Assembly: GCF_006345805.1 (NCBI RefSeq)
Contig: NC_043002.1
Coordinates: forward strand, 107,074,001-107,138,000
DNA length: 64,000 nt
Reading direction: 5' to 3'
From: Octopus sinensis
Taxonomy: Eukaryota
This document shows, piece after piece, positions 723 through 57,405 of this stretch. Position 1 is the stretch's first letter. Each line of letters starts with the position of its first letter. The notes below the pieces were generated by a model. That model was given only the letters and a program-made list of their open reading frames with translations, was not told the origin of the DNA and made no database searches. The translations under genes were made by a program, and so were the position numbers.

Positions 723-3700
723 GTGAGAAATTTGTGTTTGCTGTATATTTTCAATGCCTTCTTGGTGAAATCATGGAACCAAATACACAGAGAGAAATAA
801 AATACTTCAAAAAAATTATTTGACTTAGAGGAAGAAGTTCAATGTCTCTGACAGATATTTGATGGTGTGTGGCGCGGATGGGAGGATTCTTGCAACAAAA
901 TATAGTCTCTGTTAACAAGAGCATTTTTGGGTCAGATGTTGGTGTTACAGTAGGGGAGGGATTAAGTCTATCATCTGAAAAACTTGGTCCCTTCCATGGC
1001 CTTCCACACAGTTTCCATCTATCAAATTACACTTATGAGGCTTCGGTTGACCCATGGCTATTGTAGATGACCCTATGTCTTACAGTGGAATTGAACCTGA
1101 GATCACATGGTTGTGATGCACATTTTCTCACAACACAGCCATACTTGCACTGCATGAGGATGGAAGCCACCAAAATTAAGTTTTTTTCAATAAACGATGA
1201 AATAATTAATAAATTTATTTTTTTTCACTTTATTCAGCATTATGTTTGTATTTATCTCTTCTTCATCTTGAAGTATTCATCATCCAAAGCTGCCAAGTCC
1301 AGACACCCTGCCCAAGTATGTCACTGGTATATCTATGAACACAGTTGTACCTTCTCCTAGGGATATGTTTTGACAAAAGCTCAGAGTTGCCTTACTCCCA
1401 GTAATATTACAGCACACTGGGTACTAACCCAGAATTTCTAAGTCTGTGCACTAAAAGTGGTCTTAAAAAAGATAGGGTAGTCAGATCTGGAATGTCTTCA
1501 GTCATACATCAGGGCTAACTTTGAGCAATAACAACAGCAATAACAACAATAATTCTATATTTTCAGTAATTTGGGTTTGTGAACTGTTGTTATCGTTGAT
1601 TAAACCTAAGGTCATCCTTGATCAAGGAAACCTATAAAGGCCTTCTAGTACCATATTGTCCAATATGGCATTCTTGTTTTAAGCTGATAGGATGTAATTT
1701 GGTGGGATTTGGTTGCTATTTCTAGCAAGTCAAGCAACAGCATATATATTCTTTTATTTTTCTACTGGTTTCAGTCATTGGATTGTGTGGATTTCTTGAG
1801 CTACGTTATCCTACGTGCCCTTCCTTTTATAAGGATTGTAGTGTATGACAAGAGGTTTTGTACAGTTCTATATTTAAGAGATGAGGAATAATGTACATTA
1901 TTTACATTCGACGGATATTTGTCCTCATCTTGTTTGTTGTTAACACAACATTTTGGCTGATATACCCTCCAGCCTTCATCAGGTGTCTTGGGGAAATTTC
2001 GAACCTGGGTTCTCATTCCTAAGGTATTTTTTTGTTATTATTATTATCATCATCATCATCATCATCATCATCATTATTATTATTATTATTATTATTAATA
2101 TTATTATTATTATTATTATTATCATCATTATCATCATTATTATTATTCAAGTCACTGCCTGGAATTGAACTCAGAATCTTGGGGTTAGTAGCCCGTGCTC
2201 TTAACCACTACGCCATATGCCTGTGGTTTTGTATCGTAGAATTAAGGGCTGTCTCTGGAGGGATTCCATGAAAAGGATTAGAACATTCTCTGATTGAACT
2301 AGATTTTAATTTGGCTCACAACCATTTTTCTAAACTTTTGTCTTTGGTTGTTGAAGTTATACAAATTTTGTGGAAATTAATCAAAGATTATAGACATAAA
2401 CATTCATTCACAATTTTCTTCTTCTTATCTTTCAGATGCATTAAACAAGACTGTACTCACATTGCTAGGAATATATTTCGGTGGTTCCATAGCATCTATG
2501 GTCCGCTGCTGGATCTTCAACTTAGCTGGTCAAAGACTTGTAGCAAGATTGCGTACAGATATTTTTAATAATCTCATATGTCAGGAAGTTGCTTTTTATG
2601 ATAAAACAAGGTAAATACAACGAAAATTTCTCATTACCTCCGCCAAGGAAGGATGTTATTTTCATCGGCATTGTCTGTCCGTCTGTGTGCAAAATAACTC
2701 AAAAAGTTGTGAACGATATTTGATGAAACTTGCAGGAAAAGTTGGTAATGACACAAGGAACAGATGATGAAATAGTGATCTGGGAATTTTTATGGTTTCT
2801 TGAAGGATTTTTCATTTGTTATATTTACTTTACATGAAGTATTAGTTACGTTCTTTGATTATCTCCCTTGAAAACACGTTCATCATTTCCACGTAACCTA
2901 TAGTGACGTTGCTGTTTCCAAAGTTTATTTTCGGTTCTCTATTAGTAATTTTACTAGCATATCTATCTTACTAGAAACTGATGAATAAAGAGATCAAACT
3001 ACATAAACAAACGGCAGCGAAACAGTTCAGAAATTAAATAACGCTTACATATTCAAGGGTTACTAAAAGCAGCAGCAGGGGAGGAGGCAGTGGTAGCAAC
3101 AACTGATGCTGGACACTTGAGGGATGTAATAATAATAATGAAATTATTGTATACAGTGCTCAGGTGCACCACAACTTGTCAGAAAGTGCATATAAAGTAC
3201 ATGCAGTAATGTACAAATGTCTGGAAAGCGAACAGTGTATGAGTCAGATACATGCCTGTGTGTGTATGGAGGGGAGAAAATCAGGTGTAGTGTTGGCGAA
3301 TCTCAGAAAGCATGGAAGTTTTGAAGGATGCAGTGCTCCGACAACTAACAACTGATGCCGGCAGTTTGTTCCATGCTTCAGCAACTCTCAGCGTGAAAAA
3401 ATGTTTCCTGAGGTCATGGGAGCTGCGCTGTTTTCTGACTTTGTAAATATGTCCACGGGTGTTAGATGGGTGGAATTTGAAAAGGTGCTCAGAGTTATTG
3501 TTTGTACGATGGTTGATAATTTTATGGGTGTCTGCCAAGTCAGCTGCCAGACGTCGGAGTTTCAATGTGTCCATGCCCAGGGAAGTAAGGCGTTCAGGAT
3601 ATGGCAAATGCCTGATGGAGGGTATTCTTTGATCACAGAGGGATGTAAAGTGGGTAGGTAGGTTTAGTTTGGTAAGGTTAGGATTAGGGTTAGGGTTAGG

Positions 3701-6700
3701 TTTTTTTAAAATCATATGGCTGTGTTATTTTGTTTTACCCCTGCCAAAGAGGTTATGTTTTTGCTGGCATTGGTTTGGGAAATTGGGCGATTTTCAGCAT
3801 GTGTGTATATGGGTGGAAATGAGCTGCTTGGTGGAGGTCTGCACTCTCCGAGTGCTTTCCTAGTTGAAAATAATATCAATTTACATCACATGATGTACCA
3901 CCCACACCTGGGCCCCTGGCCCTTGAAGTCCTTTGACAGAGTCCAATCTGTTGCAAGCATTCAGGACAGAACATTGCTTTAAGGATTACTTATCCCCTTT
4001 CCTTCCACCAGTGTTGGAGATCCTGCTAAAATGTCATAGATGTTATCCTGACCAATCCATAATTTTTTTAAAATAACAACCAAACAAATAAAGGCCAGAG
4101 GAAAAAGGGTATCATAGCTGTTCCTTTTTATTTAAAGGATTCTGTTACCAATGCAGTCAGATCTGCTTTATAGAGAGAACCATTGAACATACCTATTTAA
4201 GATTGTTTCTAAGAAGCAACCTTTCAAAAAAAGTGAATCTCTGCTTCTGACAGAAAACATGGGCTCTGACCTTAGCTCAGTTAGGAAAGCACACAAATGT
4301 AAACGTACTCTTTCACATGCATAAAAGGTAATAAATTTTATCTCAGCTGTGCCCATCATCATAATCATCATTTAACATCTGTTTTACATGCTGGCATGGG
4401 TTGGATGGTTTGGCAAGAACTGGCAAAGCCAGGGTCCGCACCATGATCCATAGTCTCTTTTAGCTTGGTTTCTACAGCTGGGTGCCCTTCCTAATGCCAA
4501 CCACTTTACAGAGTGTATTGGGTGCTTTTTACATGGCACCATCACCAGTGCTTTTTATGTGGTACCAGCCTGTATTTACACATTAAAGAGCATGTAATTA
4601 TGTGAGACTTGACTGTTCCCCGTCTGGGTTGTAAGCATGGTTTCGTGGTTGAGAAATTCCATTTGCAATCATGCAGTTGTGAGTTTGATCCAACTATGCA
4701 ATCATCATCATCATCATTGATTAACATCTGTTTTCCATGCTGGCATGTGTTGGACGGTTTGACTGAGGTCTGGAGAGCCAGCGGCTGCACCAGGCTCCAA
4801 TCTGGTCTGGCAGAGTGTCCACAGCTGGATGCCCTTCCTGATGCCAACCACTCCAAGTGTGTAGTGGGTGCTTTTTACATGTCACCGGCACAGGAGCCAG
4901 TAAGGTGGGCCTGGCAACAATCACATTCGGATGGTGCTTTGTATGTGCCACCGGCATAGGAACCAGTAAGTGGGTACTGGCGCCAGTCACGATCAGTTGG
5001 TGTTCTCTACTTGCCACTAGCATAGTAGCCAGTCAGGTGGACCTGGCTTCGACCACGTTTGGATGGTGCCTTTTACGTGCCATCGGCATGGGGGTCGTTG
5101 GAAAAATGTCTTCTATCAGTGACTTAAATTTTGTATGTAAAACTGAGTGTAGACAGAAACTGTGTTGAAGCCTCTGCAACAACAGACTTTACCTTTACCT
5201 GGGTGATAGACTTAACCTTTTATCTGATTTAACGACATAGTCTTAACCTGTTACCTGGTTTAACAACATCACTAAACCCTTGACCATTCTGTTGATGCTG
5301 AAGTGTAATTTGAGGGAGATTTGCCTGTTATTTCCAGTAGTTTGGCTGAGCAAGTAGAGCTTCTCTTCTTGACGTATCTTAGACATTGGAATACTTTGAA
5401 AAGTTGGCCGTCTTTGATTTCTTGCATTTTCTCTGAGTAAAAGAGGTTCTTGTATTTCTTCTTTCTTGATTTTCAGGACTGGTGAGTTAACGAACCGGTT
5501 GTCATCGGACACACAAGTTCTTCAAAATGCTGTCACTGTAAGTTGAAAGCTGTTCTTATTTTGAGTTTCGTAGGAAAAGCTTAACCTTCATTTGGTCTCA
5601 AGCTGAAGTGTTATAACTAATTGCATGTGTATATACATGAGTGTTTGTGTGTGTGTGAATGGGACTGCGTGTGGGAGTGTGTTTGTATATGTGTGTGTGT
5701 GCACATAGTGTAATTACCCTCCTCCTCCTCATCATCATCATTTAATGTTCATGTACACCATATGTGCACGACATGGACATTTCATATCAAGATAAGCAGC
5801 GCATGACCTTGCAGGTGGGGGCCCAGTTAGAATTTTCTTCTGGTCGAGTAACCCATCCCGCTCAAAAGGTCCCTGAATAAGGATTGTTTAAGGATGTTGA
5901 ACGAAACACCCATGTTTCCAGAGGTGAATTATTCAAACCCCAAAGAATTCCTCTCAACACATGGCTATGATGCTCCCCCAACTACTTCTGCTCGTGATCA
6001 GAGATGCACATATCGTCAGCCACAAAGGGACATGGTCAACTGGTTAAGGTCAAACAACTGACAAGCAAATCTGTGGTATTGAGCAGAATATTTGCTGTAG
6101 CCCATCTTTTATACCAAGACAAAACAATGTACATGATAACACTACTAATCAGTTAAGATCAGAAATCACGAGAGCCAATGCCTGGTACTGCATCAGGGCA
6201 TTCATTCATTCATTCAATCATCATCATCATCATCATCATTTATTTATTTATTTATTTATTTATCTATTTAAGGTCAATGTTTCAATGTTGCTGCGTTACC
6301 TGCTTCAAATCATTGGTTCCTTAGCTGTGATGTTTGTCTTGAACCCTGCATTAACTGGTGTTTTACTCGGAGTAGTACCACTGGTATCATTTGGAGCCGT
6401 CCAGTATGGTAAGATCACCATTTCATTGTCACTTGCCACACATACAGATATATTAAATTTCATCATCATCATTGTTTTGATATCTAATGTTCTATAAGGC
6501 AGCTAGCTACCAGAATTGTTAGCACGCCGGGCGAAATGCTTAGCAGTATTTTATTTGTCTTTACCTTCTGAGTTCAAATTCCACCGAGGACAACTTTGCC
6601 TTTTTATCCTTTTGGGGTCGATAAATTAAATACCAGTTGCATACTGGGGTCAATCTCATCGATTGCCCACCCCCGTCCCCAATTTCAGGCCTTGTGTCTA

Positions 6701-9700: not shown

Positions 9701-11312
9701 ACACTGGGTGTCAAGCACTGGTAGTGGACAAACACAAACACCCACACATCCAAACACACACACACGTGACAGGCTTCTTTCAGTTTCCGTCCACCAAATC
9801 CATTCACAAGGCTTCGGTTGGCATGGGTTTAGAGTTAGAAGACATCTGACCAAGGTGTCACTTGGTGGGACTGAACCCGGAACCATGTGGTCGGAAAGCA
9901 AGATTCTTACCACACAGCCAAGTGTGTCCTTATAATAAATAAATGATATTCAGATAGGGAAATCCTGACAACGATCCCAGTACACCTCGCATGCTACGCG
10001 TGCGCTCTACCACTGGAGCTAATCCTCACCAGTTACTTCCCTTTACGCTATCTCGACTAGCTGTAAAGGGGCATAACTCTTACCGAACTAAATACCACAG
10101 TTCCTTCATTCTGTTGTATTTCGTTAATTACCTCCATAGTTGTAGTAAGCATCCCCTTCAAGTCCTCAGTCCTCCTCTTATCAAACAGCCTCACACCACA
10201 CATCTCTCTCACCATTGCTCTCTCAGTCCTTCTCAAAATTACCATCTCTCTCTCTCCTTCAGACACCTTGTCTCACTCCCATACAGCACTGCTGCTCTCA
10301 CACAACTCCTATAGACCTTTCCTTCCATCTTCAATGAGAACCTTTCCTTTCATCTTCTTGTAGACCTTTCCTTTCATCTAGTTTGTCCAGACCACATGGG
10401 ATGGAAGCACTCCGTCGGTTACGACGATGTGGGTTCCGGTTGATCCGAATCAACGGAACAGCCTGCTCGTGAAATTAACGTGTAAGTGGCTGAGCACTCC
10501 ACAGACATGTGTACCCTTAACGTAGTTCTCGGGGATATTCAGCGTGACACAGAGAGTGACAAGGCCGGCCCCTTGAAATACAGGTACAACAGAAACAGGA
10601 AGTAAGAGTGAGAGAAAGTTGTGGTGAAAGAGTACAGCAGGGATCACCACCTTCCCCTGCCGGAGCCTCGTGGAGCTTTTAGGTGTTTTCGCTCAATAAA
10701 CACTCACAACGCACGGTCTGGGAATCAAAACCGCGATCTTATGACCGCGGGTCCGCTGCCCTAACCACTGAGCCATTGCGCCTCCACGTCCAGACCACAT
10801 ATTCCCTCTCTGGCTCATATTCTCTCTAACAGTGTTTCTTTTACAGTGATGATTTTTTTTTTTCTGATACAAAGATTCTCTCTTTACAGGAACACTCGAT
10901 GGCTCTGTAGGGTTTATATCTTATGCCGCCATTTGCCTTGTACTATGGTATGGAGGAAAATTAGTCAACGAGAAAACTGTCTCACCTGGACTATTGACAT
11001 GTAAGTTCGATTCTGATGGTATACTTCACTGATGTCTTTTTTTTTAAGTCAACTTTATTATTTTGTCTGAACCAAAGTGCTTATCTCAAAACAAACCGTA
11101 TGAATTGGACTAAACAGACCATCTTCTTAAGTAATTGGAAGAGATGAGTGAGTTTGATAAGAAGTGTACACACACACTCACACACATTTATATATATATA
11201 TACATATTTATATATATATATATACATCTATTTATATATATATTTACTTATATATACACACACACACACATATAAATATGTATATAGATACATATACATA
11301 CACACATATATA

Positions 11313-16253: not shown

Positions 16254-19151
16254 TTTCCTTTTTATTATATAGAACTTCTTGGCTTTTGGTCAGGCAGTTT
16301 TTTTTTTTCAAAATTTTTTCAAAGGCACTTATTATTATACTGGTTGCTTGACCTTGCCTTTCATCCTTCCGAGGTTGATATTATTATTACTACTACTACT
16401 ACTACTACTACTACTACAGTTCAAATTCTGCCGAGGCTGACTTTGCCTTTCAACCTTTCGCGGGTCGATTACGCACTGATACGCACTGAGGTTGATGTAA
16501 TCGACTTAATCCCTTCCCTCAAATTGGAAGCCTTGTGCTTCCAGTAGAAGGGATTATTATTATTATTATCATTATTATTATTCAAAGGATGGTGGCATGT
16601 AAAAAGCACCATTCGAGATTTGTCGATGTCAGTGCTGGCTGACTAGTCCCATGCCGGTGGCATGTAAAAAGCACCATTTGAGTGTGGTCATTGCCAGTGC
16701 CATCTGACTGGCCCTCATGCCTGTGGTATGCAAAAAGCACCATTCAAGCGTGGTCATTGCCAGTGCCGCCTGGCTGGCCCTCATACCGGTGGCATGTAAA
16801 AAGCACCCACTACACTCTCAGAGTGGTTGGCGTTAGGAGGGGCATCCAGCTGTAGAAACTTTGCCAGATTAGATTGGAGCCTGTTGCAGCCTCCTGGCTC
16901 GCCAGCCCTAAACGATGACGATGACGACGATAATGACAGTGGCTTGGCAGAATCATTAAAGTATTGGACAAAATGCTTTGGAATATTTCTTCTACTGTTT
17001 TATGTTCTGAGTTCAAATCCTACCAAAGTTAACTTTGCTCTTAACTGCCTAGGGTCAATGAAATAAAAGGAACACTCCGTCGGTTACGACGATGAGGGTC
17101 CCAGTTGATACGATCAACGGAACAGCCTGCTCGTGAAATTAACGTGCAAATGACTGAGCAATCCACAGACACGTGTACCCCTAATGTAATTCTCAGGGAG
17201 ATTCAGCGTGACACAGAGTGTGACAAGGCCGGCCCTTTGAAATACAGGTACAACTCATTTTTGCCAGCTGAGTAGACTGGAGCAACGTGAAATAAAGTGT
17301 CTTGCTCAAGGACACAACGCGTCGCTGGGAATCGAACTCACGACCTTACAATCGTGAGCCGAATGCCCTAACCACTAAGCCACGCGCCTTCACTCAATGA
17401 AATAAAGGACCCAGTCAAATACTGGGTTTGATGTAATCAAATTATTCCGCTTCTCTCAAAATTGCTGGCCTTGTGCCTAAATTTGAAATTATGATTATTT
17501 ATAGCAGTCTGACGATGGGAAGTGTTGCCACTGTCAGTATTATCAGTTCTATGATACAAAAGGACAATAATTATAGCATTAGACTAACAAGCACCTTTGT
17601 TAAAATTTGTACCTTTTGTGTTTTTTTTTTTTTTTGCTCATTTATCACATAATTCTTATATCTTCTTATAATATATTGAAACGATACTAATTTTCAAAAT
17701 AAAAAAATATTTATAATATTTAAATTGGATCAGCAAATTTGTTATTTGTATATTAGCAATTAATATATGCTTATGATAACAATGATAATACTGTTTAATT
17801 ATCTCTCTCTATATAAACGGCAGTTTGTCTGTGCGTGTTTCTGTGTGTCTGTTTTCTCGTACCCTCACCCTGACCACAGCTTTCAACCAATTCTGATGAA
17901 ACTTGACACACACATAGCCCAATGTCATAATTCAAAACTAACGCAGCGAAAATTTTGAAAAGTTCCCCCAGTTCTGAAAAAAATCGATAAATTCGACATG
18001 GGGTCGAGAATCAGAAACCCAAACCACAGACCGTCTAGGGGACGCAACTCCACCTTTTTTAACTCTCAAAAAAATTTACCATCATTTTTTTCCCTTTTTT
18101 TGCTATTTTTTGGCTATAACTCTCTAAAAATGCTTATAGTTATTTCCCTTACAAACCTGAGCAACGCCGGCGATACTGCTAGTCTTTATATATAAAAGTG
18201 AAGTTGTGTGTCTGTCTCCTACGATTTAGATTCCTAACAACTCCCACATTTTGCGGTGCAGTTTAACCAAAAGCGGGTATCTTATAGTCGTGATTCATAT
18301 CGAGCCCTTCTGGGTATTAGCGCGTGTCTACGATGAGTCTACGATTTAAAAAAAATTTACCATAATTTCCCCGCACTTTTAATGCATTTTCGCTCGGTTT
18401 ATATAAGGGAAGTAACTCTCTATAAATGCTTATATAGTTATTTCCCTTACAAACCCGAGCAACGCCGGGCGATACTGCCAGTTAATTATAAAGATCATAT
18501 ATATTACCGTTGTGGCAATTGCCAAGGAAGAGAATTATCTTATCGGAGTTATCTCCCTTGCTACCGTTACTACCATTGGAGTTATCTCCCTTAGCATCCT
18601 ATCATCAAGCCAGCAATATGTTAGATCAGTGGTTCTCAACCAGGGGTTTCCGGACCCCTGGTGGTCAGTAAAGGTAGTACTGGGGATCCGTGAACTAAAT
18701 TCAAAATTTCGTGTGTGTGTGTGTATGTGTGTGTGTGTGTGTATATATGTGTGTGTATTTATATATATATATATATATATATAGTGAAAGCGCATTGCTC
18801 AGTGATTAGAGCGTCGAGCTTGAGGTTGAGGTTGTGAGTTCAATTCCTGGACTGGGCTGAGTGTTCTGTTCTTGGGCAAGACACTTTATTTCACATTGCT
18901 CCAGTTCACTCAGCTGCAGAAATGAGTTGCGACGTCACTGGTGCCAAGCCGTATCAGCCCCTTTGCCTTTCCCTTGGATAACATCGGTGGCATGGAGAGG
19001 GGAGGCTGGTATGCATGGGCGACTGCTGGTCTTCTATTAAAACAACCGTAGGTTGTGCGTTCACCAGTGAGGCGACTTTACACCCAGACTTGTACCCTGG
19101 AGAGGAACCTCTTAGGTTCACCATGGTCATTCGTGACCCCGACGAAGTCGT

Positions 19152-21534: not shown

Positions 21535-24094
21535 TTTATTATTTCAGGGAGTATCTTTCAAGGTTGAATCTGGCAATGTGATAGCATTAGTAGGGCCATC
21601 TGGTGGTGGGAAATCTACAATTGTGAATCTTATTGAGCGATTTTATGATCCAGATAGTGGCAAGATATTTCTTGGTAAGTTGCAATTTTGAAAATATTTT
21701 GCAAAGGACCATTTTCATTTATAGTGATGGTCATATGTCATAGTTGAAGTTTTATTCCCAAATCAGCTCTGATCAAGGGTTAGGGTTAAGTCTGATTAAG
21801 TAGACTTATGGCAAAAGGCACACTTTTTTTTTTCTCAGGAAAATTACTTTATGTATTATTTTAAGATACAGGGCAATTTGGCTGTTATTTCTAGGAGAGT
21901 GAATGACTATTTTGTACCTTCATTTGTAATTCTATTCTGTTTATATAAATATTTTAGCTTAAAAGCTGCTTGATAGGGTGGCTTTTAAGCTAGTTCTTGT
22001 AAAGGGTTCTTGATTGGGCCTTGGTCCCAACAACGACGCTTCATGCATTGAGTACATATTAAATTTCATTAAAATTGAACAATATTTTTATAATAACAGT
22101 TTTCATCAAAACCATGATTGCAAAGCTGCATGATAAACAACATGTTTTGTCTTTCCATTCGGGGTCAGTACAAATAGTATCTCCCCATTCCCAATCCTTG
22201 CACAATCAACATAGAGCTGGCCGTGTGAAAAGTTCCACCAGATGAAGCCCAGTTCCTTTCAATGATTTTCCCTGGGACTTATTGATTGACATTGCATAGC
22301 TCACTCTCACTGGAAATTGAAGTCTTTTGAACTCAAAAGGAAGATCTGGAGGAATTAAGGGGATTCTTGGAATTAAAACTCTCTCCTTTCCTGGACCAAA
22401 CACGTTTAACCCTTTCATTAATAACCCTGCTGAAGCCGCCTCTGGCTCTGTAGTACAAATGTCTTGTTTTTATAAGTTTTGAATTAAAATCTTCCACCAA
22501 ACCTGAGTCACAATTTATGTTCTTAACACTAGCTGAATGATAACTAAATTATTTTACTAAATTCTTTGTTATATTTAAAATAAATTGAAAGAAACACAGG
22601 GCATATCTACAGAAATATGGTAACCAAAGGGTTAAAATATATAATAGACAAACAATTCTTAACCCTTTTGATACCAGCGTGGCTGAAACCGCCTCTGGCT
22701 CTGTAGTACAAATGTCTTGTTTTCATAAGTTTTGAATTAAAATCTTCCACCAAAACCTTAGTCACAATTTATGTTCCTACCACCGGCTGAATAATAACTA
22801 AGTTTTTTACTAAATTCTTTGTTATATTTAAAATCAATTGAAAGAAACACAGACAATCTCAAAATAAAGACAGTAATGAAAGTGTTGAGGCCAGTTTTAC
22901 CTGCCAAGCTGTTGTTTAGCCTTGAGGGGTCCTTGATTGACTGTTACCTCTTCTATTAACCAACATCTTGGCCTACATTGGTGTCATTATTTTTTAAAGA
23001 CTGTGCTTTAAAGGAGATTTGGTTGTTATTTTTAGTGATTCAAGCAACCAAGTTGTGGTTTTTCCCTTTCATTGGTTCTAAATGGTTCCATATTAATTCT
23101 ACAGATTCACAGATTTACTTCTTATTTTCTATTTCTTTTCTTTTTACTCTTTTGTTCATGATTTTCTCTTCTCAGGTGGCTTTCACATTAAAACCTTAAA
23201 TCCGTCTTGGTTTCGTAAGCAGATTGCAATGGTTGGCCAAGAACCAACCCTGTTTGCTTGCTCCATCAGAGACAATATAGCTTTTGGACGAGACTCAACT
23301 CCAGAAGAGGTACACATGCCTTTCCTTTTTCTTTTCTTTTCTCTGTTTGTTTGTTTTTCTTTGCTGTTTCCATCAGTGGCATTATTCTTAATGTGGAGGC
23401 GCAATGGCCCAGTGGTTAGGGCAGCGGACTCGCAGTCATAGGATCGCAGTTTCGATTCCCAGATTGGGCGTTGTGAGTGTTTATTGAGCGTAAACACCTA
23501 AAGCTCTACGAGGCTCCGGCAGGGGATGGTGGTGATCCCTGCTGTACTCTTTCACCACAACTTTCTCTCACTCTTACTTCCTGTTTCTGTTGTACCTGTA
23601 TTTCAAAGGGCCGGCCTTGTCACTCTCTGTGTCACGCTGAATATCCCCGAGAACTACGTTAAGGGTACACGTGTCTGTGGAGTGCTCAGCCACTTACACG
23701 TTAATTTCACGAGCAGGCTGTTCCGTTGATTCGGATCAACCGGAACCCTCGTTATCGTAACCGATGGAGTGCTTCCATTATTCTTAATGTTCAACTACAA
23801 GACAACCAGGTTGACTTTGCCTTTCATCCTTTTGAGACTGGCTCCTTCCCCCAAATTTCGGGCCTTGTGTAGAAAAGAATAGTTTTCAGGTTCCCACTAC
23901 AGCTTGGTTGAGAGGCACACTTCCTAATCATAAAGGCACAGGTGTGTCTGTGTGAGGTAAGAAGTTTGTTTACCAACCACATGTCTCCAGGTTCAGTCCA
24001 ACTTCGTGGTACCTTAGGTGAGTGTCTTCTACTATAGCTTCAGGCCAACCAAAGCCTTATGAGTGGATTTGGTAGATGGAAACTGAAAGAAACC

Positions 24095-25290: not shown

Positions 25291-26696
25291 TATCATCATC
25301 ATTATCACCACCATCATGTTCGTTATTACACCACCACTATCAGCATCGTCATTATCATCATCAGCATCATCATGATATTCATCATTATTACACCATCATC
25401 ATCATTGTCATCACCACTATCATTATCATCACCACCATCATGTTCGTTATTACACCACCACTATCATCATCATCATCATCATGTTCATCGTTATGACACC
25501 ACTACTACCAGGATCGCCATCATCATAATTTATCAGATCCTCCTCCTTCTCTTCCTAAACCCCTCATTGCATTACATCCATGTTGACCCCTAACTAATAA
25601 ACCGTGCCTGTGCTGTTGTTCGTTACAGATTGTCGATGCTGCCAAAAAGGCCAATGCCCACAACTTCATCATGTCTTTTGAGGAAGGCTATGATACTCTT
25701 GTCGGGGAACGAGGAATCCGTCTTTCTGGTGGTCAGAAACAGAGAGTAGCCATTGCCCGGGCTTTGATTATGAATCCTTCTTTGTTATTACTTGACGAGG
25801 TGAGTTGCTTTATGTCTCAGACAAGGAGACACTGTCTCTCCAAAGCTCTTTAACCCTTTCGTTACTGTATTTATTTTGAGATGCTCTATGTTTCTTTCAA
25901 TTAATTTTAAATATAACAAAAAATTTAATAAAATAACTTATTTATCAGTAAGCTAATGTTAGGAACATAAATTGTGACTAAGGTTTGGTGGAAGATTTTA
26001 ATTCAGAACTTTTGAAAACAAGACATTTGTACTCAGAGCCAGAGCTGGTTTCAGCCGGGTTGGTATCAAAAGGGTTAACTGCATCTCTAGAAATGGTCAT
26101 CAAGGCCCTATTGGCTGGACGGGTGACGTGAACATCAATGGTAAGCAACGAACGTTATTCCGATTCACAGATGACACTGTACTCATTGCTGAAGCCACAG
26201 ACCAATTGCAGGCCGTGTGGACTGACCTGGACACTCATAGTTTAGCTTTAAATCTTAAAATGAGCTGGATGCAAACATAATATATGCATTATTATTATTA
26301 TTGTTGTTGTAGTTGTCGTCGTCATTGTTGTTGCTGTTATTGTTGTTATTATTATTGTTGTTGTTGTTGTTTTCTTCATCTTCTTCTTATTGTTACTGAA
26401 GGCAGTGAGCTGGCAGGAATGTTAGCTCGCTGGGTGATATGCTTAGCAGTATATCTCATCGACTGGCCCCCTCCTAAAATATCGGGCATTGTGCCTTGAG
26501 TAGAAAAAAAAACATTATTATTATTATTATTGTTATTATTATTATTCAGGTCATTGCCTAAAATCGAACTTGGAATCTTGGGGTTAGTAGCCTGTGCTCT
26601 TAACCACTACGCCATATGCCTGTGGAGACATCGTCTCCAGCTGGCTATATACGACACAATCTGTGTCCTTATATTTTCGAACACACAACACATATG

Positions 26697-26732
<36 letters not shown>

Positions 26733-28144
26733 ATAAGCTTCAATTCCTGTCTACCAAATCCACTCACAAGGCTTTAGTCGGCTCGAGGCTATAGTAGAAG
26801 GTACTTGCCCAAGGTGCCACACAGTGGGACTGAACCCAGAACCATGTGGTTGGTAAACAAGTTTCTTACCCCGCTGCCACTCCTGCGCTGTCCATCAAAT
26901 ACACACCACACACACATATAACTAACTGGTACTCCGTCAGTTATGATGATGAGGGTCCTAGCTGATCCAATCAACATAGCAGCCTGCTCATGAAGTGCTA
27001 GATTCCCTTGTTCTTTTGAAAATATAAGGACACAGATTGTGTCGTATAGCCAGCTGGAGACGAGGTTTCCTGGGGCTAAATTAGGGTTAGGGTTAGGATT
27101 TAGAACATTCATGTAACTAGTTGTCACTTTGAAAACTATGTATTTCGAATGGGAATTTGGCAGTGCCACCTCTAGCCAAATAATTATTCTGTGCTGATGA
27201 AGGGAAATAACCCTGAAATTGTGATACACAGATATTGTTTTGAGCTGAGTGGGGGTGCTAGATTCTTGTTTGAAAATATAAGGGCACAGATCATGTCGTA
27301 TAGCCAGCTGGAGACGATGTCCCATGGGACTAAATTACAGCAACATTCATCCTAAACCAGGACTGCAATGTTATGTTGGCAAACAATTTTTACTACAGTG
27401 ACTTACTTGTTTTTGGTGGAATATAGACCCCCCCCCCATTCCTCACACCTCCCTCTCTCCCCACACACTATAAAGATGAAAAATACTCCCCAAAATGTAG
27501 TGAATGAGGCGTGAAGGAAGTTGTGAAGTGAATAATAAAATGGTTTTCCTTGTGAATTGTTGTTTCCAGGCTACGAGTGCTCTGGATGCGGAGAGCGAAC
27601 ATTTGGTACAGCAAGCCATCGACAGAGCATTGGTTGGTCGAACAGTGATTGTCATTGCACATCGGTTGTCAACTGTAAGAAACGCAGCACAGGTAATGGC
27701 TTCTACTTCTGTTAACATTTATGCTTAAGTTTTGGGGAGGCATCCTACACACACACACACACAGATTGATTGTGTCGGGAACAATGAGAACTTTTTGAAA
27801 ACTATGCCTAGGCCTCTGAGCAGGTATCGCCAAGCTTTTGGCAAAATTTGATGCAGATTCTCTACTCAACTTTCTCTGCCATGGTCAATGTGACGATCAC
27901 ATGCTACACCTGTTCCTTCCAAGCATTGCTTTAAACACCGGAAGTGAGCTAGAATGTTAAAACTTAGTGCACATGCACAGCAGAGGTCAAGGTCAATCTG
28001 TGTTGAGTGGCTTCACTCTGTGCTTTAGCTTCGTTACTATGGCAACAGTCTGAATACTTATTGATCAGACCACACACACACACACATTTAATTCCTAGTT
28101 TTGTCTTTTTTGCTGTTTTATTTTCATTTTGTTTGGTAGTTATG

Positions 28145-28179
<35 letters not shown>

Positions 28180-28677
28180 CGTGTGTATGGCTGGAGAGGA
28201 AAAGAGAGAATCTGAATAAGAAAGAGTGTGTGTGAGAAGTTGAGAGAGAGAGAGAGGAAAAGAGTGGCATAGTGTGTGTGTGTGTGTGGTGTGTGTGTGT
28301 GTGTGTATGTATTTCTTTATTTTCGTTTTTTCTTCCTCTTTGCTATCTCCTTGTGTTTCCTCCCTCAGGTCCTTGTCATTGACAAAGGTTGCATAGTTGA
28401 ACAAGGAACCCACGACGAGCTGCTGGCGTTGAATGGAGTTTACAAAAGGCTCGTCGTTCGTCAGCTGGCTGTCCCCGGTAACATCGATGCCCCTAAGCAT
28501 CCCGCAACTGCCGAAAACCAGAACCTCTTCCAGCCATCTGAAGTTTACCCAGAGAACATGCTGTCGGCGGCACCGCTTAGCCGCAGTCTTCCAGCCACGG
28601 CATCAGTCCCCATTCACTCTCGAAGTCATCAGCCAATCGCAGAAGAATGTCTGGCAGGGAGTCCAGCGATACACTGA
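611..28677 (+). CDS. ABCB-family half transporter (TMD+NBD; TAP/ABCB9/ABCB10-like), 14 coding exons in window, 5' part upstream of window
   Basis: The spliced exons give a continuous 625-aa frame. It contains the ABC membrane-domain motif [18 protein letters not shown], Walker [10 protein letters not shown]-loop VGQEP, signature LSGGQKQR, Walker B/D-loop LLLLDEATSALD and H-loop IAHRLST. All introns are GT-AG with consistent phases. The exact orthologue is not determined. Confidence 0.95.
1860..2033 (-). mobile_element. Penelope-like terminal-repeat fragment with decayed hammerhead (same family as 36975-37065 and 37347-37462)
   Basis: Minus strand reads GACAC-CTGATGA-A-GGCTG-loop-CAGCC-AAAAT-GTT-GTGTT, with GAAAC mutated to AAAAT. 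Confidence 0.6.
2146..2225 (-). mobile_element. Short tRNA-derived SINE with (AAT)n tail (second copy about 26543-26625)
   Basis: Minus strand has an A box TGGCGTAGTGG and a B box GAGTTCAATTCC followed by an AAT/GAT microsatellite tail; no full cloverleaf. Confidence 0.7.
2436..2610 (+). CDS. ABCB exon b (DALNKTVL...[28 protein letters not shown])
   Basis: Acceptor TTCAG at 2431-2435 and donor GTAAAT at 2611; phase 1 to 2. Confidence 0.93.
2633..2800 (+). mobile_element. 5' part of Helentron-associated (HINE/DINE-1-like) element
   Basis: Starts ATTACCTCCGCCAAGG followed by a GTCTGTCCGTCTG microsatellite; 3' end not located. Confidence 0.55.
3128..3630 (-). mobile_element. 5'-truncated CR1-clade LINE 3' end
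   Basis: Minus [25 protein letters not shown]...TRGH...[17 protein letters not shown]...SFK ends at the stop 3281-3283, followed by a 3' UTR and (TTA)n tail; typical CR1 ORF2 C-terminus. Confidence 0.9.
3735..3865 (+). mobile_element. Mini HINE/Helentron-type element (about 130 bp)
   Basis: 5' subTIR TTACCCCTGCCAA, 3' subTIR TTGGTGGAGG (3828-3837), hairpin GCACTC-TCC-GAGTGC (3841-3855), ends CTAGTT. Confidence 0.65.
5477..5537 (+). CDS. ABCB exon c ([20 protein letters not shown])
   Basis: Acceptor TTTCAG and donor GTAAGT at 5538; conserved ABCB coupling-helix motif. Confidence 0.95.
5780..6200. mobile_element. Unclassified interspersed-repeat-like segment
   Basis: Complex, GC-richer block bounded by microsatellites; only one copy in this window, so family and orientation are not established. 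Confidence 0.3.
6273..6408 (+). CDS. ABCB exon d ([12 protein letters not shown]...GAVQY)
   Basis: AAG acceptor after a (TTTA)n tract and donor GTAAG at 6409. Confidence 0.92.
6497..6714 (+). mobile_element. SINE family B (tRNA-like head plus GCCTTTCATCCTTTCGGGGTCGATAAATTAAGTACCAG core)
   Basis: Same sequence recurs at 12757-12973, 12987-13204, 21321-21504, 35506-35738 and many partial sites. Confidence 0.85.
7195..7490. repeat. 18-bp minisatellite (ACACACACAGGTG[T/C]GCAT), about 16 copies
   Basis: Direct inspection; the ORF track repeats [12 protein letters not shown]. Confidence 0.95.
7837..8025 (+). CDS. ABCB exon e ([13 protein letters not shown]...[16 protein letters not shown]...AVQ)
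   Basis: Acceptor TTTCAG and donor GTAAGT at 8026; EAA-like motif [14 protein letters not shown]. Confidence 0.95.
9554..9920 (-). mobile_element. SINE family A, divergent full-length copy
   Basis: Matches the family A copies at 36258, 38671 and 41652. Confidence 0.8.
10050..10360 (-). mobile_element. RTE-clade LINE ORF2 C-terminal fragment
   Basis: Minus translation [25 protein letters not shown]...[27 protein letters not shown]. Confidence 0.85.
10398..10787 (-). mobile_element. SINE family C with 13-bp TSD
   Basis: tRNA-like head; GTCCAGACCACAT is duplicated at 10385-10397 and 10788-10800. Confidence 0.92.
10890..11000 (+). CDS. ABCB exon f (GTLDGSVGF...LWYGGKLV...GLLT)
   Basis: Acceptor TTACAG and donor GTAAGT at 11001; LWYGG motif. 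Confidence 0.94.
13315..13388 (+). CDS. ABCB exon g ([25 protein letters not shown])
   Basis: Acceptor TTGCAG and donor GTAAGT at 13389. Confidence 0.93.
13695..14100 (-). mobile_element. SINE family A, full length
   Basis: Head GGCG(G)AGGAGTGGCTGTGTGG, internal TA/TG microsatellite, GTAAAAGA-repeat tail. Confidence 0.9.
14420..14929. mobile_element. Foldback element with 93-bp inverted arms and TG/CA core
   Basis: 14420-14512 is the reverse complement of 14837-14929 with a few mismatches. Confidence 0.8.
15679..15772 (+). CDS. ABCB exon h ([16 protein letters not shown]...KIDG)
   Basis: Acceptor TTGTAG and donor GTAAG at 15773; [14 protein letters not shown] motif. Confidence 0.95.
16589..16937 (+). 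mobile_element. Family F retroposon end: 66-bp tandem units plus GGAAGGGCATCCAGCTGTAGAAAC tail plus (GAT)n
   Basis: GTGGCATGTAAAAAGCACC-type motif recurs at about 16591, 16656, 16722 and 16788. The same tail occurs at about 4360-4560(-), 4700-5090(-), 8060-8250, 9090-9290, 11535-11735(-) and 20690-21150. Confidence 0.8.
17068..17393 (-). mobile_element. Chimeric SINE (family D) nested in a family B SINE, 13-bp TSD
   Basis: TSD TCAATGAAATAAA at 17055-17067 and 17394-17406; the 5' half resembles family E and the 3' half resembles family C. Confidence 0.85.
17802..18182 (+). mobile_element. Non-autonomous Helitron, 381 bp
   Basis: A|TC start, 3' hairpin region CCTGAGCAACGCCGG, CTAG|T end; near-identical 381-bp copy at 37645-38025. 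Confidence 0.88.
18183..18481 (+). mobile_element. Second non-autonomous Helitron, 299 bp, head-to-tail with the first
   Basis: TC start, hairpin CCCGAGCAACGCCGGG, CCAG|T end; shares about 60 bp of 3' terminus with 17802-18182. Confidence 0.8.
18627..18700 (+). mobile_element. hAT-like left terminus fragment
   Basis: Starts CAGTGGTTCTCAACCAGGGG, a typical hAT/Charlie-type TIR start; right end not found. Confidence 0.45.
18786..19153 (+). mobile_element. SINE family E (second copy 38118-38455)
   Basis: tRNA-like head TGGCTCAGTGGTTAGAGC...GAGTTCAATTCC; body shared with the 38118 copy. Confidence 0.85.
19153..19500. repeat. Long imperfect (TA)n array
   Basis: Direct inspection. Confidence 0.95.
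20444..20505 (+). CDS. ABCB exon i ([21 protein letters not shown])
   Basis: Acceptor TTGCAG and donor GTAAT at 20506; A-loop YPSRP. Confidence 0.95.
21200..21320. repeat. Compound trinucleotide array (GTT)n(GAT)n(GAA)n
   Basis: Direct inspection. Confidence 0.95.
21548..21674 (+). CDS. ABCB exon j (Walker A GPSGGGKS)
   Basis: Acceptor TTTCAG and donor GTAAGT at 21675. Confidence 0.97.
22106..22400 (-). pseudogene. Helitron RepHel PIF1-helicase C-terminal fragment with one frameshift
   Basis: [40 protein letters not shown]...LHL / [14 protein letters not shown]...[18 protein letters not shown], stop at 22106-22108. Confidence 0.92.
22410..22631 (+). mobile_element. piggyBac-type MITE, 222 bp
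   Basis: TTAA-CCCTTT...AAAGGG-TTAA, with TTAA at 22406-22409 and 22632-22635. Confidence 0.85.
22663..22884 (+). mobile_element. piggyBac-type MITE, second copy
   Basis: TTAA-CCCTTTTG...AAAGTG-TTGA; internal sequence matches 22410-22631. Confidence 0.8.
23176..23309 (+). CDS. ABCB exon k (Q-loop VGQEPTLF)
   Basis: Acceptor CTCAG and donor GTACAC at 23310. Confidence 0.95.
23395..23775 (+). mobile_element. SINE family C with 15-bp TSD
   Basis: CATTATTCTTAATGT at 23380-23394 and 23776-23790. Confidence 0.93.
25135..25520. repeat. Degenerate (CAT)n array
   Basis: Direct inspection. Confidence 0.9.
25629..25799 (+). CDS. ABCB exon l (signature LSGGQ, Walker B LLLLDE)
   Basis: Acceptor TTACAG and donor GTGAGT at 25800. 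Confidence 0.97.
25854..26074 (-). mobile_element. piggyBac-type MITE, third copy (inverted)
   Basis: TTAA at 25850-25853 and 26075-26078; CCCTTT/AAAGGG termini. Confidence 0.85.
26125..26280 (+). mobile_element. Non-LTR (RTE-like) reverse-transcriptase fragment
   Basis: [29 protein letters not shown]...ALNLKMS; FTDD is a degenerate FADD catalytic motif. Confidence 0.75.
26995..27337 (+). mobile_element. 260-bp-period direct-repeat element containing a hammerhead and TTAGGG repeats (Penelope-pLTR/retrozyme-like)
   Basis: Direct repeats 26995-27083 and 27255-27337; inverted third copy 26627-26682. Confidence 0.65.
27188..27232 (+). ncRNA. Type I hammerhead ribozyme motif, sense to ABCB pre-mRNA
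   Basis: TCTGTG-CTGATGA-AGGG-AAATAA-CCCT-GAAA-T-TGTG-ATA-CACAGA: 6-bp stem I, 4-bp stem II, complete core, NUH = AUA. Confidence 0.75.
27570..27692 (+). CDS. ABCB exon m (ATSALD...IAHRLSTV)
   Basis: Acceptor TTCCAG and donor GTAAT at 27693; D-loop and H-loop. Confidence 0.97.
28369..28677 (+). CDS. ABCB terminal coding exon (VLVIDKG...GTHDELL...RQL plus 69-aa tail, TGA)
   Basis: Acceptor CCTCAG at 28363-28368; open frame to TGA at 28675-28677. Confidence 0.92.
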
Positions 28678-30256: not shown

Positions 30257-30588
30257 GGGATGGAAGCACTCCGTCGGTTACGACGACAAAGGTTCCGGTT
30301 GATCCGATCAACGGAACAGGCTGCTCGTGAAATTAACGTGTAAGTGGTTGAGCACTCCGCAGACACGTGTACCCTTTGAAATACAGGTACAACAGAAACA
30401 GGAAGTAAGAGTGAGAGAAAGTTGTGGTGAAAGAGTACAGCAGGGATCACCACCATCCCTGCCGGAGCGTCGTGGAGCTTTAAGTGTTTTCGCTCAATAA
30501 ACACTCACAACGCCCGGTCTGGGAATCGAAACCGCAATCCTATGACCGCGAGTCCGCTGCCCTAACCACTGGGCCATTGCGCCTCCAC
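30257..30588 (-). mobile_element. SINE family C with internal deletion, 10-bp TSD
   Basis: TCTATGGAAT at 30247-30256 and 30589-30598; about 55-60 bp deleted between CCCTT microhomologies. Confidence 0.9.
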
Positions 30589-47548: not shown

Positions 47549-47820
47549 TAGAAATATTTAAATTTTAAATATCTCAGAGAGATATGAGCGATGTGGAACG
47601 TGGAACGAAGAGCAGTTGTATACTGTCAACTAACGTGGGAGCCAACTTGTACAGACATAAAGCAAAAGTCAAACATAGAATAATAATAATAATAATAATT
47701 AATAATATAATAATAATAATAATAATAATATGATTAGAAAATTAAATTTCTAAATATCTCAGAGAGATATGAGCGTGGTGGTGGAACGATAGAGCGGTTG
47801 TATACTGTCAACTTAACGTG
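47026..47820. repeat. Composite tandem array, period 164-186 bp
   Basis: Unit starts ATTAGAAA at 47026, 47204, 47383, 47547 and 47733; unit = about 95-bp segment + 41-bp LINE end + (AAT)n. Confidence 0.9.
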
Positions 47821-47935
47821 ACAGTCCCGTAAAGGGAATCACAGCACCGCTATTTAGCCCTAGGAAACATCGACATTTCCTGTGTCCTTATGTTTACGAA
47901 GGGGAGACAAGCACCCCCAACAGCTAGGCCTGCAT

Positions 47936-47981
47936 CCAGAAACACATGCATGTTTCTGAGTCTTGCTCATCATCAGTTTGG
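47936..47981 (-). ncRNA. Variant hammerhead motif (antisense partner of 48122-48165)
   Basis: Minus strand CCAAA-CTGATGA-TGAG-CAAGA-CTCA-GAAA-CATGCATGT-GTT-TCTGG; one stem I mismatch and a 2-nt insertion. Confidence 0.5.
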
Positions 47982-48100
47982 TGTAGCATCGGTCATATCT
48001 CTCTGAGATATTTAGAAATTTAGTATCTCTAATTTTGGTGATCAGTGAATAAACTTCCCTGAAAATATATATATGTTTACGAAGGCTTTATAAGCATCTT

Positions 48101-48180
48101 CAGCTAGCAGGCCATGCTACTCCAGACTGATGATGAGCAAGTCTCAGAAATATGCATGTCTCTGGATGCAGGCCTAGCTG
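48101..48180 (+). ncRNA. Type I hammerhead ribozyme motif with extended stem I
   Basis: CCAGA-CTGATGA-TGAG-CAAGT-CTCA-GAAA-T-ATGCAT-GTC-TCTGG; flanks CAGCTA...GGCC..TGC and GCA-GGCC-TAGCTG extend stem I; predicted cleavage after C48160. Confidence 0.78.
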
Positions 48181-48334
48181 TTGGGGGTGCTTGTCTCCCC
48201 TTCGTAAACATAAAGACACAGGAAATGTGTCAAAGCCGACAGGAAGCGTCGATGCTTCCTAGGGCTAAATAGAGGGGGGGTGATTCCTTTTACGGGACTG
48301 TCACGTTAAATAATAATAATAATAATAATAATAA

Positions 48335-57305: not shown

Positions 57306-57405
57306 NNNNNNNNNNNNNNNNNNNNNNNNNNNNNNNNNNNNNNNNNNNNNNNNNNNNNNNNNNNNNNNNNNNNNNNNNNNNNNNNNNNNNNNNNNNNNNN
57401 NNNNN
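57306..57405. other. Assembly gap (100 N)
   Basis: Run of N. Confidence 1.

Follow-up and report, generated by a model that had tools for sequence, protein, structure and literature searches.

Hammerhead ribozymes have been described in animal genomes in several settings. The canonical metazoan type I hammerhead has a helix I of 6 bp, a helix II of 4 bp and a helix III of 1-2 bp closed by a small (2-4 nt) palindromic loop; such hammerheads occupy repeats as well as the terminal repeats of Penelope-like elements, mostly as solitary truncated copies, and some form pairs on opposite strands, 100-700 bp apart (PMC4209133). Penelope insertions come as partial tandems, often adjoin an inverted 5'-truncated copy and show a bias towards microsatellite targets (PMC8557442). 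Retrozymes that lack long terminal repeats (non-LTR retrozymes) are made of head-to-tail repeats of 150-450 bp, each with a hammerhead; solitary monomers are common in retrozyme families, and a preprint of 2026 makes the case that retrozymes and Penelope-like elements are evolutionarily one thing. Finally, amniotes carry hammerheads in the introns of protein-coding genes, and these are thought to be derived from retroelement ribozymes (de la Pena & Garcia-Robles 2010, via PMC6155905). We compared with these systems a hammerhead motif of Octopus sinensis, located at positions 27188-27232 on the plus strand of a 64,000-nucleotide stretch (contig NC_043002.1 of assembly GCF_006345805.1, positions 107,074,001 to 107,138,000), hereafter the window, whose numbering is used throughout. 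The motif lies in an intron of an ABCB-type transporter gene. Our preferred reading, to which we give a probability of about 0.72, is that it is the hammerhead of a short non-coding retroelement-derived repeat, present in the intron as a passenger copy.

The intronic motif and its sister copies

An initial annotation, made from the letters of the window, had described a complete hammerhead core at this site. All of its elements are present base for base, as judged both by direct reading and by an independent descriptor scan of both strands of the window. The segment reads UCUGUG CUGAUGA AGGG AAAUAA CCCU GAA AU UGUG AU A CACAGA and has the type I order, with helices of 6, 4 and 2 bp. Helix I is formed by UCUGUG (27188-27193) and CACAGA (27227-27232), which make six Watson-Crick pairs. 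The catalytic core from C3 to A9, CUGAUGA (27194-27200), is the same in all three copies discussed below; it leads into helix II (27201-27214), in which AGGG (27201-27204) and CCCU (27211-27214) enclose a loop 2 of AAAUAA, and then into the core bases G12, A13 and A14 (27215-27217). Helix III (27218-27225) consists of the pairs A15.1-U16.1 (A27218-U27225) and U15.2-A16.2 (U27219-A27224), closed by the tetraloop UGUG (27220-27223). The hammerhead consensus predicts self-cleavage 3' of A17 (27226), in the triplet AUA. Every base of the invariant core, C3 U4 G5 A6 N7 G8 A9 and G12 A13 A14, is in place at 27194-27200 and 27215-27217, as are the A15.1-U16.1 pair and a base other than G at position 17. 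Helix lengths and loop size are those of the canonical metazoan type I form, the UGUG loop not being a true palindrome.

The predicted structure reaches further than the initial annotation had it. Both the minimum free energy and the centroid folds include helix II and an extended helix I, which continues beyond an internal loop 1, with UAU (27185-27187) facing the single U27233, into a closing helix of 7 bp whose strands lie at 27178-27184 and 27234-27240; this closing helix had gone unmentioned. Loop 1 of canonical type I hammerheads is placed 6 bp from the core (PMC4209133), the same spot as the UAU of the intronic copy, and a sister copy (L2, below) has a counterpart in UAC facing U, followed by a closing helix of its own; in the canonical form, loop 1 is the loop that contacts loop 2. 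Of 200 dinucleotide shuffles of the whole 64-nt stretch, 199 fold less well than the real sequence (z = -2.74).

The core match is not unique to the intronic copy, a point on which the initial annotation had wished to see its proposal checked: related copies in the window keep the core. Two more copies of the motif are found, at 48121-48166 (+) and 47935-47982 (-). The first belongs to copy L2 (48109-48312, plus strand; nhmmer match 48112-48312), in which an extended hammerhead (48109-48175) containing the core motif is followed by a tail, and which lies about 19.5 kb downstream of the end of the ABCB gene. Its hammerhead, detected with a strict descriptor, reads UCCAGA CUGAUGA UGAG CAAGU CUCA GAA AUA UGCA UGU C UCUGGA, with a GUC triplet. 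The second belongs to copy L2rc (47811-47995, minus strand; nhmmer match 47993-47811), placed head to head with L2; here the core is intact, helix I is paired at 4 of 6 positions, and a 2-nt insertion lies near the cleavage site, and this copy is predicted to misfold.

In all three copies, the hammerhead stands directly upstream of a tail, which in the two distal copies is about 150 nt long. The tail of the intronic copy (27241-27373, plus strand; nhmmer match 27184-27373, E=1.9e-39) is homologous to those of L2 and L2rc: when 27233-27345 is aligned locally with 48167-48312, the score is 56, while shuffles give 17.5 +/- 2.9 (z = 13), and 48167-48312 is 82% identical to the reverse complement of 47811-47934. 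Two further pieces of the family lie in the same intron. One is a tail-only copy, L1a, with no hammerhead (26995-27088, plus strand), which is 84% identical to 27255-27337 (nhmmer E=2.8e-19); the other is an inverted tail fragment (26618-26683, minus strand), 89-91% identical to both plus-strand copies (nhmmer E=1e-11). Searching the window with an nhmmer profile of the three hammerhead copies returned family members only, namely the intronic copy (L1b), L2, L2rc, L1a and 26683-26618.

We then asked how well the structure itself is shared. A covariance model was built from L2 and L2rc only, and the whole window was searched with filters off. The intronic motif came out as the third match (27178-27241, 24.2 bits, rough E~2e-4), all other matches being CA-repeat junk of at most 12.5 bits. 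The model alignment was used for comparing pairs because MAFFT put the GAAA one column off, the lengths of loop 2 being different. In this alignment, which is fitted to the model and holds three sequences from two diverged lineages, standard pairs make up 91.7% of the pair cells, and changes on both sides between the lineages of the intronic copy and of L2 are seen at 12 of the 21 pairs. The closing helix accounts for five of these 12, helix I for four, helix II for two (of its four pairs) and helix III for one. The pairing and double-change values of the real alignment were reached by none of 500 shuffles, and sliding the 3' partners by 1-3 columns left 25-53% pairing and at most two double-changed pairs. 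With all core bases kept and nearly every helix position swapped in a compensatory manner, this is the signature expected of a ribozyme maintained during the diversification of the family.

The hammerhead consensus is short, and a match to it could arise by chance in AT-rich, repeat-rich intronic DNA with no ribozyme ancestry at all. Chance expectation was derived for a permissive descriptor, which allowed G.U pairs, a helix II of at least 3 bp and a helix III of at least 2 bp, under a first-order Markov model of the window. Given a CUGAUGA, the motif is completed under this model with probability 4.8e-5 when helix I has at least 4 bp and 6e-6 when it has at least 6 bp; over the 17 CUGAUGA sites on both strands of the window, this gives about 8e-4 and 1e-4 expected matches, respectively. 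A gigabase-size genome should contain a few to a few tens of chance matches to the permissive descriptor, and a single isolated match in a whole genome would not be proof of a hammerhead; the Rfam models, moreover, give the motif no support. What was found in the window is of another order. The strict descriptor has two matches, both with a 6-bp helix I, and a relaxed one has three, compared to 0.39 expected per random window, so that three motifs in 64 kb stand against roughly 1e-4 to 0.4 expected, depending on stringency. All three occupy the equivalent position of homologous repeats, and it is this coincidence that is decisive against chance. The intronic motif was also recovered by a covariance model trained without it, and the compensatory changes described above count against chance as well. 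We regard a chance origin as close to refuted, and as very improbable.

The Rfam result deserves separate mention, as the initial annotation had suggested this check and the outcome was negative. None of the three copies matches a hammerhead model: with Rfam 15, cmscan gave no hammerhead at gathering score on the window, and relaxing the limit to E<=10 gave none either, whether 2.5 kb or the 121 nt surrounding either motif were searched. Under these models the window copies do not reach 8 bits. This lowers the claim to formal membership of family RF00163, and the evidence from consensus, repeat family and covariation stands. The same scan returned weak matches to archaeal C/D small RNA models at 27187-27250 (8-12 bits, E 1.5-8), which, together with the usual intronic location of small nucleolar RNAs in animals, might suggest a box C/D RNA, with box C as UGAUGA (27195-27200), D' as CUGA (27213-27216), C' as UGUGAU (27220-27225) and D as CUGA (27245-27248). 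These scores are far under the gathering thresholds of 37-54 bits and their E-values are at noise level, the models sharing UGAUGA and CUGA with the motif. Besides, UGAUGA is preceded by C and not by a purine, the ends pair only as one C-G and two G.U without a terminal stem, and a length of about 60 nt is below the size of animal C/D RNAs. The homologous L2 copies lack the D box (GCUGUU versus GCUGAG) while their hammerhead is kept whole. We therefore reject a box C/D RNA as extremely improbable.

Several points count against a retroelement hammerhead, in addition to the silence of Rfam and to the small, model-fitted sample behind the covariation. The base of helix II is A27201-U27214 in place of the usual G10.1-C11.1, and is U-A in L2 and L2rc. 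No reading frame for a reverse transcriptase (RT) or a GIY-YIG domain occurs anywhere in the window, and Tandem Repeats Finder detected neither a tandem of about 250 nt nor a hammerhead-to-hammerhead array within 26000-28000. Outside the window, family members were not found: a profile of a conserved reading frame across the repeat gave nothing, and no member turned up when metagenome contigs were scanned with two DNA patterns, and viral contigs with one of these and a third. The only match of the pattern scans, a bacterial contig, was discarded as a chance match to a 19-mer.

Active natural hammerheads with a weak helix II base have been reported, such as HHR_Amex2 (PMC7229834). It is a possibility, though an improbable one, that the family forms a lineage of cephalopod hammerheads, marked by A-U or U-A at 10.1-11.1, that is missed altogether by current Rfam models. 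As the copies of the window are invisible to the Rfam hammerhead models used by genome projects, such genomes may hold more ribozymes than have been counted, and finding them calls for a descriptor or for a model made for the family.

Parent element and cleavage competence

The initial annotation had related the motif to hammerheads with a very short helix III, as associated with Penelope-like elements and animal retrozymes. This attribution is supported, with related copies that also keep the core. Most likely, the repeat is either a 5'-truncated piece of a Penelope-like terminal repeat or a single, solitary monomer from the non-LTR retrozymes, which are related to it. With no RT or GIY-YIG frame in the window and no tandem array within 26000-28000, the choice between the two is left to architecture and insertion pattern, on which a Penelope-like terminal fragment and a solitary retrozyme monomer are indistinguishable.

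The insertion pattern at L2 and L2rc is of the Penelope type, with an inverted 5'-truncated copy beside a direct one at a microsatellite target: both copies are 5'-truncated and head to head, their ribozymes are about 130 bp apart, and the pair is bordered at either end by (TAA)n/(ATA)n. At the intronic locus, two direct tail copies and the inverted fragment 26618-26683 lie beside (CA)n. A 29-nt sequence, CATATCTCTCTGAGATATTTAGAAATTTA, occurs at 47744-47772 and at 47995-48022 in inverted orientation, flanking L2rc; it could be a junction 'tail' like those known from Penelope insertions, or could belong to a foldback structure.

In the parent element, the ribozyme would fold as three helices around the CUGAUGA...GAAA core and would cleave the transcript that contains it, by transesterification on the 3' side of position 17; the products would carry a 2',3'-cyclic phosphate and a 5'-OH. 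Such cleavage would trim the transcripts of the element to unit length. A copy of the repeat would then have inserted in sense orientation between the Walker B and D-loop exons of the ABCB half-transporter gene, where it would be a passenger that may cut some pre-mRNA molecules as a monomer.

Hammerheads with so short a helix III can act as dimers, and the initial annotation had stated that AUUGUGAU of the intronic copy still self-pairs with G.U wobbles. Predicted energies speak against this, the self-duplex being put at +1.2 kcal/mol, compared to -9.5 and -13.3 kcal/mol for the palindromes of the sister copies. In L2, the helix III region is a 10-nt near-palindrome, AUAUGCAUGU, predicted to form a double-hammerhead dimer; accordingly to RNAcofold, it makes an intermolecular helix III of 10 bp (gain -11.7, duplex -9.5 kcal/mol), whereas none is formed by the intronic copy. 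Dimer cleavage through AUUGUGAU was rejected as unlikely on these predicted energies. A derivation of AUUGUGAU from ATCGCGAT by CpG decay, also proposed in the initial annotation, is a conjecture; the sister copies carry AUAUGCAUGU and ACAUGCAUGU, with no CG palindrome. The window as a whole is CpG-depleted, with an observed/expected ratio of 0.59.

The dimer route may not be needed, however: invertebrate hammerheads typically have a helix III of 2 bp and a tetraloop, and retrozyme hammerheads built in this way are efficient cleavers in monomeric form (PMC7229834). For activity as monomers, type I hammerheads rely on an internally looped extension of helix I (PMC6155905), and such an extension is present in the intronic copy, in which every position known to be essential for catalysis is correct. 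The AUA cleavage triplet occurs in natural hammerheads, for example in ELVd (PMC1636495). From its sequence, residual monomeric cleavage activity of the intronic copy is plausible.

The ABCB intron and its other repeats

The placement of the motif on the sense strand of an ABCB intron, as initially annotated, holds: all exons are on the plus strand, and the motif ends 338 nt before the acceptor. The nucleotide-binding domain of the ABC transporter is split into exons, with Walker A near 21593 and the Q-loop near 23232. The exon with the signature and Walker B (25629-25799) ends in LLLLDE and is followed by the donor GTGAGT at 25800; the exon with the D-loop and H-loop (27570-27692) encodes ATSALD...AHRLSTV; the last exon is at 28369-28677. 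The intron of interest, which precedes the D-loop exon, spans 25800-27569 (1770 nt). Joined, the exons match Pfam ABC_tran (E=1.7e-31), and the closest database relatives of the five joined exons are ABCB-type half transporters of various animals, with at most 77% identity. The orthologous gene was not found, searches with the D-loop exon and with the five-exon protein giving at best fragments of 77-90% identity from unrelated animals; exact look-ups of two open reading frames (ORFs) of the window had no match.

The intron is a mosaic of decaying repeats of the same and of other families, a patchwork that is expected under neutral decay, and the sibling tail copies differ from the intronic copy by 9-16%. 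About 43% of the retrozyme-related copies of Xenopus lie in introns, which makes an intronic copy an ordinary occurrence. There is no sign that the host uses the ribozyme, and we infer that it has no host function.

A domesticated ribozyme would give another meaning to the same position. On that account, co-transcriptional cleavage of the ABCB pre-mRNA would lower or modulate mRNA output, in the manner proposed for the conserved amniote hammerheads of RECK, CTCL and DTNB. The sense orientation, the whole core and the looped helix I extension, which has been linked to fast monomeric cleavage (PMC6155905), all speak for it, as does the integrity of the motif next to tail copies that have diverged to the extent just given. 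Xenopus retrozyme copies are mildly depleted from introns, a hint that insertions of this kind can matter. Yet with a decay of about 8% per copy, the roughly 13 invariant bases and the stems would survive by luck with an estimated probability of roughly 0.1-0.3; the copy sits among decaying fragments of its own and other repeats; and its pair 10.1-11.1 is A-U. Reportedly, among ribozymes placed in introns only fast cleavers disturb splicing (Dye et al. 2006; Fong et al. 2009). We hold a functional intronic ribozyme to be unlikely, and prefer a passenger copy.

Cutting of the nascent ABCB transcript, as proposed in the initial annotation, is speculation. That the intronic copy cleaves as a monomer, and does so in a measurable share of the nascent pre-mRNA, seems improbable. 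If it did, invertebrates would have an equivalent of the conserved amniote intronic hammerheads, seen early in the process and still recognisable as a retroelement fragment. As a catalogue entry, one more copy leaves the picture unchanged, as Penelope-like and retrozyme hammerheads are already known by thousands in invertebrate genomes, often in introns. As a sense, core-complete copy about 340 nt before an acceptor, it is a convenient natural test case for whether retroelement ribozymes disturb the splicing of host genes.

Other repeats of the window are listed here for completeness. Directly before L1a, from 26931 on, 64 nt show 75-83% identity with the 5' portion of a different and commoner repeat that resembles a short interspersed element (SINE), with relatives at 10409-10640, 17074-17300, 23540-23770 (-) and 30268-30500 and a 12-bp hairpin, GTTCCGGTTGATC/GATCAACGGAAC. 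L1a and this upstream piece may be a chimeric element, with a SINE head and a hammerhead-family tail, or a nested insertion. A degenerate hammerhead was considered in the SINE-like repeat and four relatives on the basis of MAFFT columns, and was rejected: there is no CUGAUGA and no GAAA adjoining a helix II, and the alignment is spurious. A tRNA-like SINE head at 26560-26625 (-), with a box A-like TGGCGTAGTGG and a box B-like AGTTCGATT, cuts off the inverted tail fragment 26618-26683, which points to nested insertions; ARAGORN found no tRNA anywhere in the window.

Short telomere-type TTAGGG runs occur at 27081-27100, in the tail of L1a where the intronic copy has CAGC, and at 3684-3702, where the run abuts the upstream end of a minus-strand ORF (3284-3724). 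By eye, this ORF is like the C-terminal region of a non-LTR retrotransposon protein; Pfam searches with it and three other ORFs gave no family. Several ORFs of 90-260 codons are translated simple repeats only. The window has a G+C content of 38% and is very rich in (CA)n, (TA)n, (TAA)n and (GA)n microsatellites, and a run of 100 N at 57306-57405 marks an assembly gap.

Comparison with described hammerhead systems

One close likeness is to the hammerheads of non-LTR retrozymes (Cervera & de la Pena 2020, PMC7229834), including Schistosoma Sm-alpha, newt satellite 2 and the coral and mussel repeats. They share the type I topology with the copies of the window, and also the details: a helix I of 6 bp with an internal loop and a closing stem, a helix II of 4 bp with a loop of 5-6 nt, and a helix III of 2 bp with a tetraloop. 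In both cases, the ribozyme is embedded in an AT-rich non-coding repeat of a few hundred bp, many copies of which are solitary monomers. The head-to-tail organisation of retrozymes is not found within 26000-28000, in contrast, and the neighbouring copies lack the ribozyme or are inverted. A second difference is the pair 10.1-11.1, A-U or U-A here and G-C in the retrozymes.

The terminal-repeat hammerheads of Penelope-like elements (Cervera & de la Pena 2014, PMC4209133; Arkhipova et al. 2017; Craig et al. 2021, PMC8557442) compare well in other respects. About 150-190 nt separate the ribozyme from the 3' end of its copy, solitary and truncated copies predominate, a head-to-head pair occurs at a spacing within 100-700 bp, and insertion is into microsatellites; the palindromic helix III region of the sister copies would suit cleavage as a dimer. 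Unlike in complete Penelope-like elements, no direct repeats flank an RT and GIY-YIG frame in the window. The 'minimal' hammerheads of Schistosoma Penelope-like elements are more distant, having a helix II of 7-8 bp and a helix I of 4-5 bp, where the copies of the window show the canonical 6 and 4 bp for helices I and II.

Among cephalopods, the genome of Architeuthis dux has been reported to contain Penelope elements and 235 loci annotated as Rfam Hammerhead_1 (RF00163) (PMC6962438). These loci and the copies described here belong to the same ribozyme class, although an annotation of this type would miss the latter. The intronic hammerheads of amniotes (HH9 in RECK, HH10 in CTCL, and DTNB; PMC6155905) resemble the octopus motif in being type I hammerheads on the sense strand of an intron in a protein-coding gene. 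They differ in that the amniote ribozymes are deeply conserved at orthologous positions and free of surrounding repeats, whereas the octopus motif still lies inside a recognisable repeat, with sibling fragments beside it.

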